From: Syncephalis fuscata S228
Taxonomy: Eukaryota; Fungi; Zoopagomycota
Assembly: GCA_025786725.1 (NCBI GenBank)
Contig: JAHLTZ010000015.1
Location: 248,001 to 312,000 of the forward strand
Direction of reading: 5' to 3'
Length of the DNA stretch: 64,000 nt
Position numbers and translations under genes: made by a program
In this document: positions 1 through 64,000 of the stretch, one piece after another
Layout: every line of letters begins with the position of its first letter
Position numbering within the stretch: the stretch's first letter is position 1
The notes under the pieces: model-generated
The model's input: the letters and a program-made list of their open reading frames with translations, nothing else
What the model was told of the DNA's origin: nothing
The model's database searches: none

Positions 1-3000
1 ACGTTCAACATTGGAAATTATACGAGATGCACGTGCTATTGCACCACCTCGACGTGCATTTAGCAATACAGATGCCGATTCTACTGGTCCACATTCCTCT
101 TTGTCAAATAACGACACTATAGATGAGCAAGAGCATTTATCGACTGTAGGAACGTTTAAAATGGCAAAACATAACAGTTTAACCGCTCGAGTTAATCCAG
201 TACCGCAAGTAGGCGATAAACGACCGCCAACAGAAGAGAATGTATCGACAAGTGCAAAACGCCAACGTTCAACATCACTGTTGGAAAATGGTCATAAAAC
301 GATAGGTCGATCTACTACAGCCATGAGCAGTAAATTAGACAAGCGAGCCATGGCCCGAGAACAGGATAATACGCTGCTATCAGAAACATCGTCTACCAAT
401 ACACCCAGTCGTCCAGCACATGTATCGAATTCAACTAAAAATAATGCATTTTTAGAACGTGAAAAGGTAATTAATAGATTATATATACATTTATATCGAC
501 TAATTAGTTTAAATAACGACTATTTAGTTTGTATTACCAGCCATTCCTGAACCAGTTAGTCCCACCTGGCCAATGGAGTCTATGAAAAGTCCTATACATG
601 ACACCAATGCACCAGTACAACAAACACCAGCTGTTAAACCACCCACAATAGCATCGACGGAAGAAGAAACGGCCACAACTAATGGTAAAAGTAAGTATTT
701 AATAATATATTAATAATAATAGCTTATTAATAATAAATAGATCATGCTAATACATCCAAGTCAACACCGGCACATGTTTCTAAACCACCACCACCACGCA
801 CAACTATTAAAAGTTCTAAACGTACTGTACCAGCAGATCGTGCTAATCGTGGTGGCAAAAGAGCCATTCCTGTGGATCCAGCACTGGCTATTGCCATGGA
901 ATTGGCATCAGATCGTCCTTTAATACTGGATGAATTTTTTGCACGTAATCCTGATCTGCCTCATACAAGTAAGTTGTGTTGATTAATATTGGATAAATAG
1001 TTATTTATTATTTATTATCTGTTTATTTATAGAATTATTGCCACAGCGAGCCTTTCCTGATCATATCGTTGCATTTGATGGTGATGACACTTTATCGTTG
1101 ACATCGATTAGTACAAATAATCAATCACCTGTACCTATTATTAATAATGATGGTAAGATTATTTATTATTTATTTATATAGGCGCATAGACAAATATTAA
1201 TAATACACATTAATAGTTAAAAATGGCCAATCTAAAAAGTCTAATCCTACTGGCCGTATTATTCGATTACACAAACCTGTTACTGTCGTAGATTCGACAA
1301 TAAAAGCCGAGTGTATAACTGCCACTAAAAATGACGATGCTATGAATGTAGACGCCAAGAACGACAGTAACAATGATGGTAGCATTAATACATCTTCTAA
1401 TGCAAAGACATCAGATAGCAGTGCAGTTACACTAAAGAAGAAAACGACAAAATTATCTATTATTAAGTCTACTGACACTTCTACACCGATCGCTAATGAT
1501 ACAACAGATACAGTAACAGTTACAGCTGTATCAGCATCATTGGCGTCTAAAAAACGCAAGTCAGAAGCTAGTACTTCATCGACTACAGCAACTAAGAAGG
1601 CAGATGTAACTAGTTCAACTAAGTTACAAACACCGTCTAAAGAGTTGACAAAAGATAAATTAACGACCAAAAGTTCAAATAGTACCACTGATGGACGCAG
1701 TGCAAATCCTACAAGCCATACAACAACAGCATCACCATCATCATTATCGGATACTAAATCCAGCAAAACTACATCTTTAACTATTGATACTAAAAATGTA
1801 CCTGTGCTGAATGTAGCACCTACTAGCACTACAGCACCTACCTCAACATCATCTCACAGTCATTCTCGTAGTTCTAACAATAATAACAGTAATAATCGCG
1901 GATCAAGTCAGTCTACTTCTTCTCGACCAGCAGGTAGAGATAATACTGGTAGTAGTAGCACCAGTATTGGTGGTCAACGTGGCCGATCTCGTAGTCGCAG
2001 TCGCAGCCGTGAACGGGACCGTGATCGTGAGATAGACGTCGTCGTGAAGCAGCCCATAACACTGCTAGCACGTCTAATAATAATAATAATGATAATAATA
2101 GCAACACAACAGCAACAAAATAATAATAATACAAGTAGTAGCAATCATCATCGCTCACCTAGTCGTGAAAAGCGTAGTAGTGGAAAAGATCGTCGTAGCG
2201 GTGGCAGTAGTAGCCGAAATGATAATGGCCGTATGTCATCGCCACCACCACTATCTGCTTCATCCAATCGCTCTAGTTCCAACTATAACAATGGGTCTTC
2301 TAGCCGTCGACAAAGATCTCGTTCACCTAGCGGCAATAGACGACGTGCAGGCAGCAGTAGTGGTACAACAAACGATAGAGACCGCGATAGAGATACACGG
2401 CGTCGTCAATCAAGTCGGTCTCGTTCACGTTCACGTTCAAGATCGCCTCGTTCTCCAGGCCGTTCTTCAGTATCTCGACGCCAATCGATACGCTCATCGT
2501 CACCTCCACCTACTTGAGTAATAGTGCTAATATCCAGCATATTGCTTCATCATCCACACATCGATCTTCGCCTAAACGATCCAGTCATCGTAGTTCACGA
2601 GATGAAGGTAATCGTGGTAGTAGTGGTCGTGAAAGATCGGGTAGCGGTGCAGCTTCTCTTCGATCACCACGTATTCAGCATCAACACCATTCTAGTGGCA
2701 GTCAGCATCATCATCATCACAACAACAACAACAACAGCAATCATCCTCTTCATCCAATCAGCATGATCAGTCAGATTATGCAAATAGAGAAGATATGATT
2801 GCTAGAGCAACAGTATCCGCTAATACTGCTACGTCTACTGCTGCCACCACTACTATTGCTGCTGTTCATAACGAAGCTGATACTCAGTCATCAAAGAATA
2901 GTGATACTACAGCCACTGCTCGTAATACACCATCACGTCATTTAAATCTATCTGAATACAAACAGCAACGACATGCAGATCGTCAGCCTGAAAAGTCTAA

Positions 3001-3959
3001 TGCTAGTGGTAATACTAGTGAACAACAGCAATCATCTTCTCAACAACAACAGCCGCAACAACAAATGGATGTTCGTCTTAAAACACTTCGAACGTCAGAG
3101 AAACAGAAGCTGCGTCTTAATTAGTAAGTTAATCAATTGTATTTTATTAATGATTATTTATATTAATTATCTGAATAGCCATTTTCAATTGGCCCGCCGA
3201 TACAATAGACTGATCGAGCGGGCTCAAGCCAAGAATGAACGATCATGTCTGTTGCCTATCGATTTGTTATGATTATGAATGAAATGATTGCTTTTGAGAC
3301 CATTCAGCAGATTCGGGCTGATGAATCTCGTGATGCCATACTTTCTTCCATTCCAGACTGGGAGTCGTCAGTAACGGCCTTACCTCGCTGGCTACCGATT
3401 TACAGCGATCACAAGAGAATGCGTTATCGGGTCTATGCTATCGACTAGCTGTTGCAGCACAGCAACGTGTACTTGATCTACGTCTTCGCGCTGAATCAGC
3501 TGTAAGACGTCAGCAATTGGCCGAAGCATCAGCCAATCCAGCTCAAATGGGCAATGACGCATTGGCTGATCAATTATCAAAAGCATCGATTGCCTTTTAT
3601 AGAGCGGATACTGACGATAAACGGCTTGAAGAATGTGGCGAGCAGCCGATGCTAGCTTTACACTAAGTAGCATTCGAAGTGAATTTCCAAGTGTTTGGCG
3701 TCGTATTGTTGAAGGTGACTCGCCGGCACTAGATCCAGCGTTTAGTCCTTACATTCCTATACGTCAAGTTGTACCATTTGTATGGGAATTGGTGTGTGAA
3801 TATGCACGTCGTCATGACATTCACGACTTGCCACCTATGTTGCCTATGGAACCATCGACAAGTACAAGTAAATCGGCATCAATGTCGTCGGCATCATCTT
3901 CGTCGTCTGCTCTTGGTGGTGGTGCTGCTACAACATCTACACCACGTAAAAGTTCCTAA
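1..3959 (+). CDS. Large S/T/R-rich low-complexity protein with a C-terminal helical domain resembling the AF4/FMR2 C-terminal homology (fungal Ebp1_C) domain; 5' end lies outside the window
   Basis: Multi-exon, with GT..AG introns near 467-540, 692-740, 969-1032, 1154-1217 and 3124-3178. RS-dipeptide tract at 1980-2510. Rejoined across frameshifts, the C-terminus reads ...WESSVTALPRWL...ALSGLCYRLAV...RLEEMWRAADASF...PAFSPYIPIRQVVPFVWELV. The family call is from recalled motif similarity only. Confidence 0.5.
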
Positions 3960-54494: not shown

Positions 54495-56947
54495 CTATTT
54501 AACAGTGGGCCAACATGGCGTTTGAGTCGATATACTACGTAATAGATCATCAAGTGTAATTGTCGTATTTGATATGGATTTATCTGTACGATTCATCTGA
54601 CTCGTCGATGATCTACGACGACTATGATTTGAAGTTGTTTGAGTATCGATAACAATGATCGTCTGTGGATCATGACTATTAGTACAAATCTTACCACCAG
54701 ACATGCATATTAATTCACGAATATCAGGATTTGGTTTTGTTTTTAGTTGAAATTGTGCACCAGTAAATAATCGAGGTTTCTATTATTTAATACTATTGAT
54801 TAGCTGATTGATATACAAGTATTGCTAATTACCTGAGCACTCTCACGAAGTCGACTTTGACGTGGTGCATGGCATTTACCAACGGCAGAGTCACCTACTA
54901 CTTCGTATTTACTTGGATCTATCCAGTGGCCAGCTTCAGCACTTGCTACTATCCCTATAAGCAAAAAATTAAATATTTAACTGAATCAACACTAATTAAT
55001 GGCTATTTACACTTAATATCAACAATCCATCGACCTGCTAGTAACCCAGCCATATATTTGGCGGTACGTGGTGCAATTCGTTTCGTATCTGCAGGTACTA
55101 CAACATGAGTGACGTGCGGATTAAATTCTTCTACCATTCTAAATGAAAGTTGTTTAACAGTGGCCGATCTCATTATATCCTACAAGTAAACAAGTAAATG
55201 AATAAGCTTAGTATCTAGATTAGTTTGTTTACAGCCATATTATCTTACTCGTTCATTGCTTTTTAATCCAGTAATTAGAATGCATGGTGATGGTTCAGCC
55301 ATAGGTTCTTCAGAAGCAATACGTCGTACGGACCTCTTTTCTATAGAAGTCATAGATGGCGGTGTTTTACACACGCCTGGTTTACGACCTCGTTTATTTT
55401 TCTTTTCATGAGTATCGTCCAATTCTATCGCTGTAGCATTTTCTTTTAATATTTTGATTCTAATTTATCATTTGTTTTCAGCATAGTTGGTGTTTCTACT
55501 GTTAATGGTTGATTAAGTGGTGCTTTGCCTCGTGGACTTGTACACATACGACACTGTCGACGTTTTGATGTATTTAGAAATGTACACACTGAACAGGCCC
55601 ATCCCATGGGTGTATCAGTCGAGTTGCCTGCATCCATGACTGGTGACTGTATGGTTGGACATGGTGTCGACTATTTAATCAACGTCATCATTAGTAATAT
55701 TAGTAATATGATTACAATAGTAATATAGAATAGATGTAATTACCGGTGCTGATTGTCTCTGTTTAGTACCAAATAGCTTAAGACAAGTGTCGTCATAGCC
55801 TGAATAGTTTGCCGGTGAATAGTAATTATCCATGCAACGTTTTCTTAACGATACACGCGGTGTCTCTTCTACGTTCTATTTCTACTGTTAGTATTAAATG
55901 GCTAGTATTTCTATGCTACTTACGGTGTAAGGAGTTTTGTTTAATTTGTTTTTAGCAGAATTACGCTTTGCAGATTCATTAACTTGTTGTATTGAATTCT
56001 TATCGTCCAGTGTCTAGTATTAATAAGTATTTAACTTATATATATATATTCTTACCTTATCCATTATTTCACTAGTTGTAGTGCATTCCATCGGTGTAAA
56101 TGCTTGATCGGTAATTTCTATGGTCTCTTTTATAGATTTGTCATTATTTTTACTAGATGGACACTACAATAATTAAAACTACAATTAGTTGCTATTGAAT
56201 TGAATTTACATTTACATACTTTGTTTTTGATATGTGTCTCAATACGCATTTTGCCCTTGATGTCATTTAAATCATCGGTTATTTGTACATTTTTGTGAAA
56301 TAAATCTGCACTTTTCCGCCGTTTATCAACTCGATCTACTGATTTAGTATTATCGGCTGATGTATGTGCACGTTTAGTTGCTCCTACAGATGAGCCTTCA
56401 ACTATTTTATCCAATGCTACATGCTCTTCTATTGCCGTGGTAGTAGGTATCTGTTCATGCATTGTCACGGCTGCCGATGCTGTTGTCGACTGTAGACTCA
56501 ACGAAAGAGGCCGTGTCGGTTCTGTCTTTGTTAATGACCGGATCTTTAATGCACAGGTAACAAGTACATCATGAGATAGATTTTTACGCAAATTGCCAAC
56601 ACGGGCCGGTAAATTACAAACCGGACACTTGCAATGAACACCCAGTGCTTCTTCTGCACACTCGCTATAATAATAACAATAACAAGACTAATGAGTCATC
56701 AGATACAAATACCAAATAATACTACTTACGCGCAAAAGTTATGACCACATTCCATGGCTGTATGAGTCTTGTTCAATAAACAATGACTAAATTGCATTAT
56801 TGTAGTTAGTATTCATTATGACACCAATGACGTATGCATACTGTAGTTAGTATTCACTTACCAGATAGGACATTGTAAAAGTCGTTCAAAGTTGGACAAG
56901 GCACGCGTAAAACGCTTCGATACTTTAGGTGTGGTAGTGGTGGCCAT
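54495..56947 (-). CDS. BRCA1/BARD1-like protein: RING + RanBP2/NZF zinc finger + BRCT repeats
   Basis: RING LLQCPIC..CGHNFC..C..CPVC; NZF WACSVCTFLN..CRMC; BRCT LITGL..VTHVVV..PRTAKYMAGLLAGRWIV..WI..YEVVGD..PRQSR..PRLFTG. Confidence 0.85.
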
Positions 56948-57183
56948 TGTATTGAATAGACAAGCACAAGCAATAAAGTGGGTTAAAGGGAAAAAATGGA
57001 AAACAATGGTGTGCTCGTGAGCAGTGAAAAGTGTATAAAACGCGTCTTTTATTAATAATCCCAAATCAATATAAATACACTTCTATTAACACTTGTTTAT
57101 ACGTTCTACATCATCCTTGTCTCTTTCTCTACTTGTACCATATAGAATATTACGCCTAACAATAGACCGATATACAGGTAAGC

Positions 57184-63406: not shown

Positions 63407-64000
<594 letters not shown>

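Follow-up and report, generated by a model that had tools for sequence, protein, structure and literature searches.

Introduction

To our knowledge, the BRCA1-BARD1 ubiquitin ligase (E3), which is missing from the standard yeasts, has been studied in hardly any organisms but animals and plants. Here we describe a gene of this family in Syncephalis fuscata S228, a mycoparasitic fungus (a parasite of moulds) of the Zoopagales in the Zoopagomycota, an early-diverging lineage outside the Dikarya. The gene is intron-rich and lies on the minus strand at 54495-56947 of a 64,000-nucleotide stretch of contig JAHLTZ010000015.1 (positions 248,001 to 312,000; assembly GCA_025786725.1). This whole stretch is referred to below as the window, and its numbering is used throughout. 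From the N to the C terminus the gene encodes a RING, a long disordered linker, one zinc finger of the RanBP2/NZF type and a tandem BRCT. We put at about 0.6 the probability that its product is the only detectable BRCA1/BARD1-family protein of S. fuscata and acts as a self-dimerizing E3 recruited by two predicted readers, the NZF for ubiquitin and the BRCT pair for phosphopeptides.

The closest described protein is BARD1, the best solved match of the S. fuscata protein in both sequence and fold. The two share an N-terminal helix-RING-helix with a CPxCxxPA tail, and a tandem BRCT with a THVVVP block, an S/T-G and T-x-K pocket and an RRSRL...PKLF linker. The Syncephalis protein differs from BARD1 in having an NZF finger in its linker instead of ankyrin repeats, in a hydrophobic RING residue where BARD1 has an Arg, and in a pocket that reads R-T-x-K-Y, as in BRCA1, where BARD1 has S-T-L-K-C. 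A further difference is that no BRCA1 partner was found in the S. fuscata assembly. With the BRCA1 proteins of animals and plants it has in common the RING and tandem BRCT, the S/T-G...R-T-x-K-Y pocket and the hydrophobic residue that contacts the ubiquitin-conjugating enzyme (E2), and it is BRCA1 that scores highest against the family BRCT profile. BRCA1 is, in contrast, a weak match to the family RING profile. The Syncephalis protein is also much shorter than vertebrate BRCA1, with neither the extended PHD of the plant type nor a recognizable coiled coil. The term 'hybrid', under which the gene was first brought to attention, is a fair description of this pattern of residues.

The pairing of a RING E3 with a small ubiquitin-binding module recalls Polycomb repressive complex 1 (PRC1) with RYBP/YAF2, Rad18 (RING and UBZ) and RNF168 (RING and MIU/UMI). 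The NZFs of YAF2 and RYBP are among the closest solved relatives of the finger, and RING1B is among those of the RING. These systems are, however, without a tandem BRCT, and in PRC1 the NZF is on a separate subunit; the likeness is one of principle, not of family.

BRCA1-complex genes have been described as lost in model fungi and present in other fungi (PMC3969565). In a 2024 survey BRCA1 is one of the genes of the Fanconi pathway that are listed as expressed in Lobosporangium, Mucor and Rhizopus (PMC11061109), and databases have been said to hold no fungal BRCA1 orthologues (PMC8483008). In GenBank the Mortierella and Dispira orthologues of the gene described here are already named BARD1, and some other relatives carry the automatic names BARD1 or BRCA1. 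The original prediction, made from the letters of the window alone, started from the general view that yeasts and Dikarya lack BRCA1 and BARD1; in early-diverging fungi, as the GenBank names and the 2024 survey show, such genes are already known. In its architecture the protein is a new variant within the BRCA1/BARD1 family, and it is not the first fungal BRCA1 or BARD1. A literature search returned no paper joining BARD1 with early-diverging fungi and none on a RanBP2/NZF finger in a RING-BRCT protein, and no large named cluster of the Atlas combines a RanBP2 finger with a BRCT.

Results and Discussion

One transcript joins the RING, the finger and both BRCT repeats

Exon borders were first set from reading frames and GT..AG motifs and were then compared with public RNA reads. 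The stretch 54580-56984 is covered by one run only, X1, in which a single spliced contig of 1898 nucleotides extends from 56984 to 54580, from the RING through the second BRCT. The contig omits nine segments of 42-75 nucleotides, all of them GT..AG on the gene strand and with borders exactly as modelled. The run is cDNA, because the introns are skipped, and the presence of nine GT-AG joints in one contig places the RING, the finger and both BRCT exons on one mRNA. Domains on separate transcripts, which would have spoken against the original prediction, are therefore not what the RNA shows. The RNA contig ends 85 nucleotides before the stop codon, and the ten exons amount to 638 codons when one base that is present in the RNA and missing from the genome is counted. 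The location of the gene and the motifs by which it had been picked out (RALSNFERLLQCPIC, CPVCNLPARVGNLRKN, LITGL, RTAKY and the finger GWACSVCTFLNTSKRRQCRMC) are all found at the locus. The features are listed here; the exons follow from reading frames, splice motifs and the RNA contig.

56947-56862, minus strand: exon 1, with the ATG at 56947
56786-56730, minus strand: exon 2
56664-56220, minus strand: exon 3
56163-56056, minus strand: exon 4
56013-55924, minus strand: exon 5
55875-55744, minus strand: exon 6
55670-55249, minus strand: exon 7, with no intron inside according to the RNA
55179-55011, minus strand: exon 8
54954-54833, minus strand: exon 9
54779-54498, minus strand: exon 10, followed by the stop codon at 54497-54495
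56529-56917, minus strand: helix-RING-helix module, residues ~11-93, exons 1-3 (zf-RING_6 26 bits, zf-C3HC4_2 25.8 bits)
55744-56528, minus strand: linker without a Pfam domain, formed by the rest of exon 3 and exons 4-6
55527-55604, minus strand: NZF-type finger of the RanBP2 fold, GWACSVCTFLNTSKRRQCRMCTSPRG, with four Cys; T-F follows the second of these, and the second CxxC contains a Met
55449-55456, minus strand: frameshift site, where the genome is one base short of the RNA contig
54890-55290, minus strand: first BRCT repeat, from the end of exon 7 through exon 8 into exon 9 (PF00533)
54498-54889, minus strand: inter-repeat linker and second BRCT repeat, encoded by the last part of exon 9 together with exon 10; a loop rich in Ser, Thr and Arg is disordered

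The RING and the tandem BRCT are those of the BRCA1/BARD1 family

Domain searches were run on the exons one by one, and whole-protein steps were run on KAI9595408.1, the public protein of the same locus. The C3HC4 RING extends from C26 to C64 across exons 1-3 and is followed by the conserved tail CPVCNLPARVGNLRKN. In KAI9595408.1, Pfam assigns the BARD1-type RING zf-RING_6 (26 bits) to residues 18-80, along with generic RING models. Among solved structures in the PDB, the BARD1 RING aligns over residues 15-94, both flanking helices included. Against a profile built from eight family RINGs, BARD1 scores 60 bits with its flanks aligned, followed by RING1B (57), Rad18 (48) and BRCA1 (35). The flanks thus look like those of BARD1, as had been noted from the sequence. 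The E2-contact Ile of BRCA1, which CPIC was said to keep, is also present: I28 aligns with an Arg of BARD1 and occupies the position of the E2-contacting I26 of BRCA1, where each of the eight aligned family RINGs has I, L or F. By eye, the conserved Arg of LPARVGNL falls about where the nucleosome acidic-patch anchor of BRCA1, K70/R71, presumably sits, and we record this as a lead only.

The AlphaFold model of the RING, with a confidence (pLDDT) of 92, consists of a helix at 11-23, the RING itself and a helix at 77-93. Its nearest folds are helix-flanked, dimeric RINGs: TRIM69, TRIM21, Rad18 (TM score 0.8), RING1B and BARD1.

The Pfam BRCT model PF00533 matches KAI9595408.1 with an E value of 1.9e-8, and the domain matches at this locus as a whole lie far outside what chance would give. 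When KAI9595408.1 is compared with solved structures, its best match is full-length BARD1, which at 77 bits covers both the RING and the BRCT; BARD1 BRCTs reach 51-55 bits, rat BRCA1 50.5 and human BRCA1 ~39. The order is reversed when a tandem-BRCT profile of the family is used: BRCA1 then scores 109-116 bits and BARD1 93-95, and the next family, MCPH1, scores 41. The predicted structure is a complete tandem BRCT (pLDDT 82.7, predicted TM score 0.77), for which Foldseek returns the BARD1 tandem BRCT first (E value 3e-16) and BRCA1 next. The second repeat had been called degenerate. The model contradicts this, showing a folded BRCT with its own strands and helices and one disordered loop (165-184 of the model).

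The residues of a phosphopeptide pocket are in place in the first BRCT, as predicted. The T-G lies at 55272-55267 within LITGL and the R-T-A-K-Y, which follows the R-T-x-K-Y pattern of BRCA1, at 55068-55054. T406-G407 align with S575-G576 of BARD1, and T452 and K454 with T617 and K619. R451 and K454 are invariant in 11 aligned sequences, and T406 is nearly so.

By these sequence comparisons the protein belongs to the BRCA1/BARD1 family, a placement made from bit scores of the RING and BRCT. Whether the domains might group instead with Rad18, Rtt107 or MCPH1 can be answered for one half of the protein more firmly than for the other: the BRCT pair is clearly of the BRCA1/BARD1 type, with MCPH1 far below, and the RING is resolved only weakly. 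A protein without BRCA1/BARD1 kinship, in which a generic tandem BRCT had independently become joined to a RING of the Rad18 or RING1B kind, would account for a RING whose nearest structures are those of TRIM proteins, Rad18 and RING1B and for a RING profile in which RING1B nearly equals BARD1. We regard this as highly improbable. In the tandem-BRCT profile every other family trails BRCA1 and BARD1 by more than 50 bits, the two ends of the protein find their match in one and the same PDB chain, that of full-length BARD1, and all of the protein's language-model look-alikes in the Atlas are BRCA1 or BARD1 clusters.

An NZF-type finger takes the place of ankyrin repeats

The linker between the RING and the finger contains no Pfam domain and no ankyrin repeats, either in the exon pieces or in KAI9595408.1, and none of the orthologues searched gave an Ank match. 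The predicted lack of ankyrin repeats between RING and BRCT is thereby confirmed. Exon 6 (55744-55875) encodes a motif, TPRVSLRxRxxDNYxxPANYSGYDDTC, that S. fuscata shares with S. plumigaleata and Thamnocephalis only, and not with the other relatives; it may be a docking motif specific to the Zoopagales in an otherwise disordered linker.

The finger GWACSVCTFLNTSKRRQCRMC, at 55604-55542, is a W-x-C-x2-C...C-x2-C ribbon with four Cys (WACSVC...CRMC). Its exon matches the Pfam model Zn_ribbon_RanBP (PF00641) with an E value of 6.8e-5 and 22.5 bits, which is under the 27-bit cut-off. The best solved relatives of the finger are ubiquitin-binding NZFs, those of HOIL-1L (27 bits), YAF2, NPL4, TAB2/3, RYBP, TRABID and HOIP, with E values from 4e-5 to 6e-3. 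The RNA-binding finger of ZRANB2 also ranks among the solved relatives, at 21.4 bits; the fingers of Nup153 and RanBP2, which bind Ran, have lower scores than the NZFs. By definition an NZF is a RanBP2-fold finger whose Thr-(Phe/Tyr) pair acts with a hydrophobic residue of the second CxxC to bind the Ile44 patch of ubiquitin (PMC11372445). The corresponding residues are C-T-F and C-R-M-C in S. fuscata and C-T-Y and C-Q-M-C in S. plumigaleata.

Relatives of the protein were sought with exon 3, which found 14 among 1.84 billion representatives. They come from the Zoopagales (Syncephalis, Thamnocephalis), the Kickxellomycotina (Dispira), the Mortierellomycotina (Mortierella, Lobosporangium, Dissophora, Entomortierella, Actinomortierella) and the Mucoromycotina (Apophysomyces, Syncephalastrum, Jimgerdemannia). 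Homologue searches with KAI9595408.1, the family alignment and the BRCT region returned only Syncephalis, Thamnocephalis, Tetraselmis and two distant matches. The orthologues in Mucoromycota and Zoopagomycota (such as KAF9144038.1 of Mortierella, KAJ1651227.1 of Dispira and ORY96497.1 of Syncephalastrum), and with them TSEL_000930 of the green alga Tetraselmis striata, have the same domain order and are collinear with the S. fuscata protein. Several have a RanBP2-type finger at the same place, and some have lost or altered it. The finger is present in Apophysomyces (L-F...I) and Syncephalastrum (Q-F...V), and as a variant ribbon in both Actinomortierella and Mortierella; it is degenerate in Dispira and Thamnocephalis and absent from Lobosporangium. 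T. striata has two near-identical proteins with a collinear RING-finger-tandem BRCT and the finger signature T-L...V. Compared with Syncephalastrum, the algal BRCT is 40% identical (E value 2e-25), and the RING and finger match with E values of 2e-7 and 1e-3, respectively.

Judged from these alignments, the family is found across zygomycete fungi (Mucoromycota and Zoopagomycota), and the RING-finger-tandem BRCT architecture is older than Syncephalis because the same order recurs in zygomycete relatives and in a green alga. The algal occurrence hints that the architecture is ancient or has arisen more than once.

The original prediction saw in the finger the TF...M signature of ubiquitin-binding NZFs. 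For Syncephalis this is correct, both in the residues themselves and in the ranking of solved relatives; as a property of the family it fails, the T-F part being incomplete in Mucorales and in the alga. Because of this incompleteness, reading ubiquitin may not have been the ancestral role of the finger. It is also possible, though we think it rather unlikely, that the S. fuscata finger itself reads no ubiquitin, its T-F...M being incidental and its ligand RNA or single-stranded nucleic acid as for ZRANB2, Ran as for Nup153, or another protein. The loss of the signature Thr or aromatic residue in Apophysomyces, Syncephalastrum and Tetraselmis, the aberrant ribbon of Mortierella, the missing finger of Lobosporangium and the Pfam score under the cut-off all speak for such a ligand. 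A complex prediction, in which finger residues 14-56 of 55449-55670 (minus strand) were combined with Zn and the genome's own ubiquitin (L006:1462-1689, minus strand), scored 0.28, under a mark of 0.34, a result that gives no verdict and is not used as evidence. Set against this are the retention of T-[F/Y] and Met in both Syncephalis species, the preference for ubiquitin-binding NZFs over Nup153 and RanBP2 among solved sequences, and the fact that this three-residue signature is what defines a ubiquitin-binding NZF.

The genome reveals no partner gene

We searched the 29.4 Mb assembly (371 contigs), exon by exon, for a second RING-BRCT gene. The family tandem-BRCT profile finds only the three exons of the gene described here, and the next matches of the family RING profile are Rad18 and then a TRAF-like gene. 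With generic models, no RING match lies near any BRCT match on the same strand, and the exon queries have no paralogue. The check for a partner that had been proposed for this gene thus came back negative with generic and family profiles alike.

These results bear on a plainer alternative, which we consider unlikely: the protein could be an ordinary BARD1 orthologue, an obligate heterodimer subunit with a BRCA1-like partner that escaped the search through strong divergence, reduction to a RING, interruption by introns or absence from the assembly. BARD1 is a closer likeness than BRCA1 for the RING, for its flanks and for the post-RING motif CPxCxxPA, several orthologues bear the name BARD1 in GenBank, and the exon-wise generic search missed this gene's own split RING, all of which fit a heterodimer. 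The family profiles are harder to reconcile with it, since the tandem-BRCT profile points to no other locus and the RING profile leads next to Rad18 and the TRAF-like gene; nor did the assembly contain another same-strand RING near a BRCT match. The RING, moreover, keeps the hydrophobic E2-contact residue, unlike that of BARD1.

The genome contains a BRCA2 OB fold, from which we conclude that a recombination pathway exists. The probable Rad18 orthologue, which ranks second against the family RING profile, lies in L001 at 2998-3753 (C246:115997-116752); its RING (CPICKEFF...CPVC) precedes a finger of the UBZ type, CPICGQIYGLSHLNAHVNRC.

A proposed model of a self-sufficient ligase

Our preferred reading is that of a single BRCA1/BARD1-family protein that pairs with itself. 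By analogy with the RINGs of Rad18 and TRIM proteins, self-dimerization would occur through the helices that flank the RING, and the E2 would be recruited by the protein's own RING. The tandem BRCT would serve as a putative reader of a phosphoserine motif at damaged or replicating chromatin, and the NZF as a putative reader of ubiquitin, for example of ubiquitylated H2A or PCNA. The NZF might in this way take over the chromatin-reading job that animal BARD1 performs with its ankyrin repeats and the ubiquitin-recognition patch of its BRCT.

Several observations weigh against this reading. The gene copy in the assembled genome carries a frameshift, which is taken up in the next section. The RING is not uniquely BARD1-like, with RING1B at 57 bits next to the 60 bits of BARD1 and with Rad18 and TRIM21 structurally closer. 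The full T-[F/Y]...M signature is confined to the two Syncephalis species, Mucorales having L-F or Q-F and the alga T-L. Finally, the partner search was exon-wise, and its generic RING model did not recover the three-exon RING of the very gene under study, so that a split or divergent partner could escape; the 371-contig assembly is of unknown completeness, which limits the negative result to absence of evidence.

A wider version of the model is tentative, and we would not expect it to hold in full. It proposes that one self-sufficient ligase of the BRCA1/BARD1 type, a homodimer that binds its own E2 and has NZF and phosphoserine readers, is retained in zygomycete fungi and in at least one green alga. 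Such a ligase, as an ancestral or an alternative solution, would have preceded or replaced the BRCA1-BARD1 heterodimer and the ankyrin/BRCT nucleosome reader of animals. A compact single-gene version in culturable Mucor, Mortierella or Syncephalastrum would offer a simple genetic system for sorting out which of the heterodimer's functions (recruitment of the E2, targeting to nucleosomes, and the reading of phosphopeptides and of ubiquitin) go back to the ancestor. The use of an NZF instead of ankyrin repeats suggests that the reading of chromatin ubiquitin is a recurring need, served by different modules in different lineages.

A genomic frameshift and other features of the assembly

Near 55451-55456 the RNA contig has one extra base relative to the genome (an insertion behind 55451 together with a change at 55455). 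As assembled, the genomic frame runs into a stop codon at 55449-55451, directly after ESKY, and the BRCT exons are read in a different frame; the extra base restores a continuous frame into those exons. The RNA reveals no intron within 55670-55249, the contig being unbroken and free of joints from 55670 to 55248, and the deficit of one genomic nucleotide explains the change of frame. The same continuity rules out a candidate frame-rescuing intron between the finger and the first BRCT (GTAGAA donor at 55499, acceptor at 55402).

The frameshift is probably an assembly error, because the downstream exons are spliced and conserved, because the S. plumigaleata orthologue reads straight through the region, and because the ubiquitin-S27a gene of the same window likewise has a deletion of one nucleotide. 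That gene, at 63431-63700, begins MQIFV...DYNIQK and shifts frame after NIQK, where the run CCAAAAGAG falls one A short of what the conserved protein requires. The gene is an essential one and the deletion is probably an indel of the assembly, in which other frameshifts are therefore suspect.

Between 54580 and 56984 the RNA and the genome differ at five further sites, giving M to V, D to G and P to S, all in the unconserved linker, and two silent changes. All five are transitions, three of the five reading A to G on the mRNA strand, and all fit a difference of strain or allele; the RNA of run X1 may thus come from another strain or allele. Such an origin, together with the frameshift and stop in the assembled genome, leaves some room for the deletion being real, in which case the gene of the sequenced strain would be broken, either a pseudogene or a gene for a RING-NZF protein that ends after the finger, without the BRCT. 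This is very unlikely given BRCT exons that are intact, spliced and conserved downstream of the site, an orthologue in S. plumigaleata that is continuous through the region, and a ubiquitin-S27a deletion of the same kind that points to assembly indels.

The public protein KAI9595408.1 of S. fuscata is 100% identical to the gene over exon 3 and disagrees with the RNA in two places. Its exon 5 starts fifteen bases late (55999-56013), with loss of TLDDK, and within 55249-55670 an invented intron takes away the second half of the finger together with its second CxxC (RRQCR|IIKIL), a device that seems to serve to avoid the one-nucleotide frameshift. Because this mis-splicing cuts the finger, the precomputed domains of KAI9595408.1 list no RanBP2 finger. 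With the finger hidden in this way and indel errors in the assembly, domain surveys of this genome will under-report such features.

Upstream of the gene, an ACGCGT box resembling the MluI cell-cycle box (MCB) of fungal G1/S promoters lies at 57040-57045, 93 nucleotides upstream of the ATG and ~55 nucleotides upstream of the 5' end of the RNA contig. It was set aside as a promoter signal, the window showing no enrichment of the box (11 found versus 10.96 expected).

Elsewhere in the assembly, equal-scoring domain matches occur as pairs on different contigs (C13:566791 and C236:2382; C135:177742 and C365:15577; C100:11244 and C235:285260), and the matches paired in this way include a RING, a RanBP2 finger and the OB fold of BRCA2. 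Duplicated haplotigs, or else recent duplications, may be present in the assembly. The RING-NZF-BRCT gene itself is present once.

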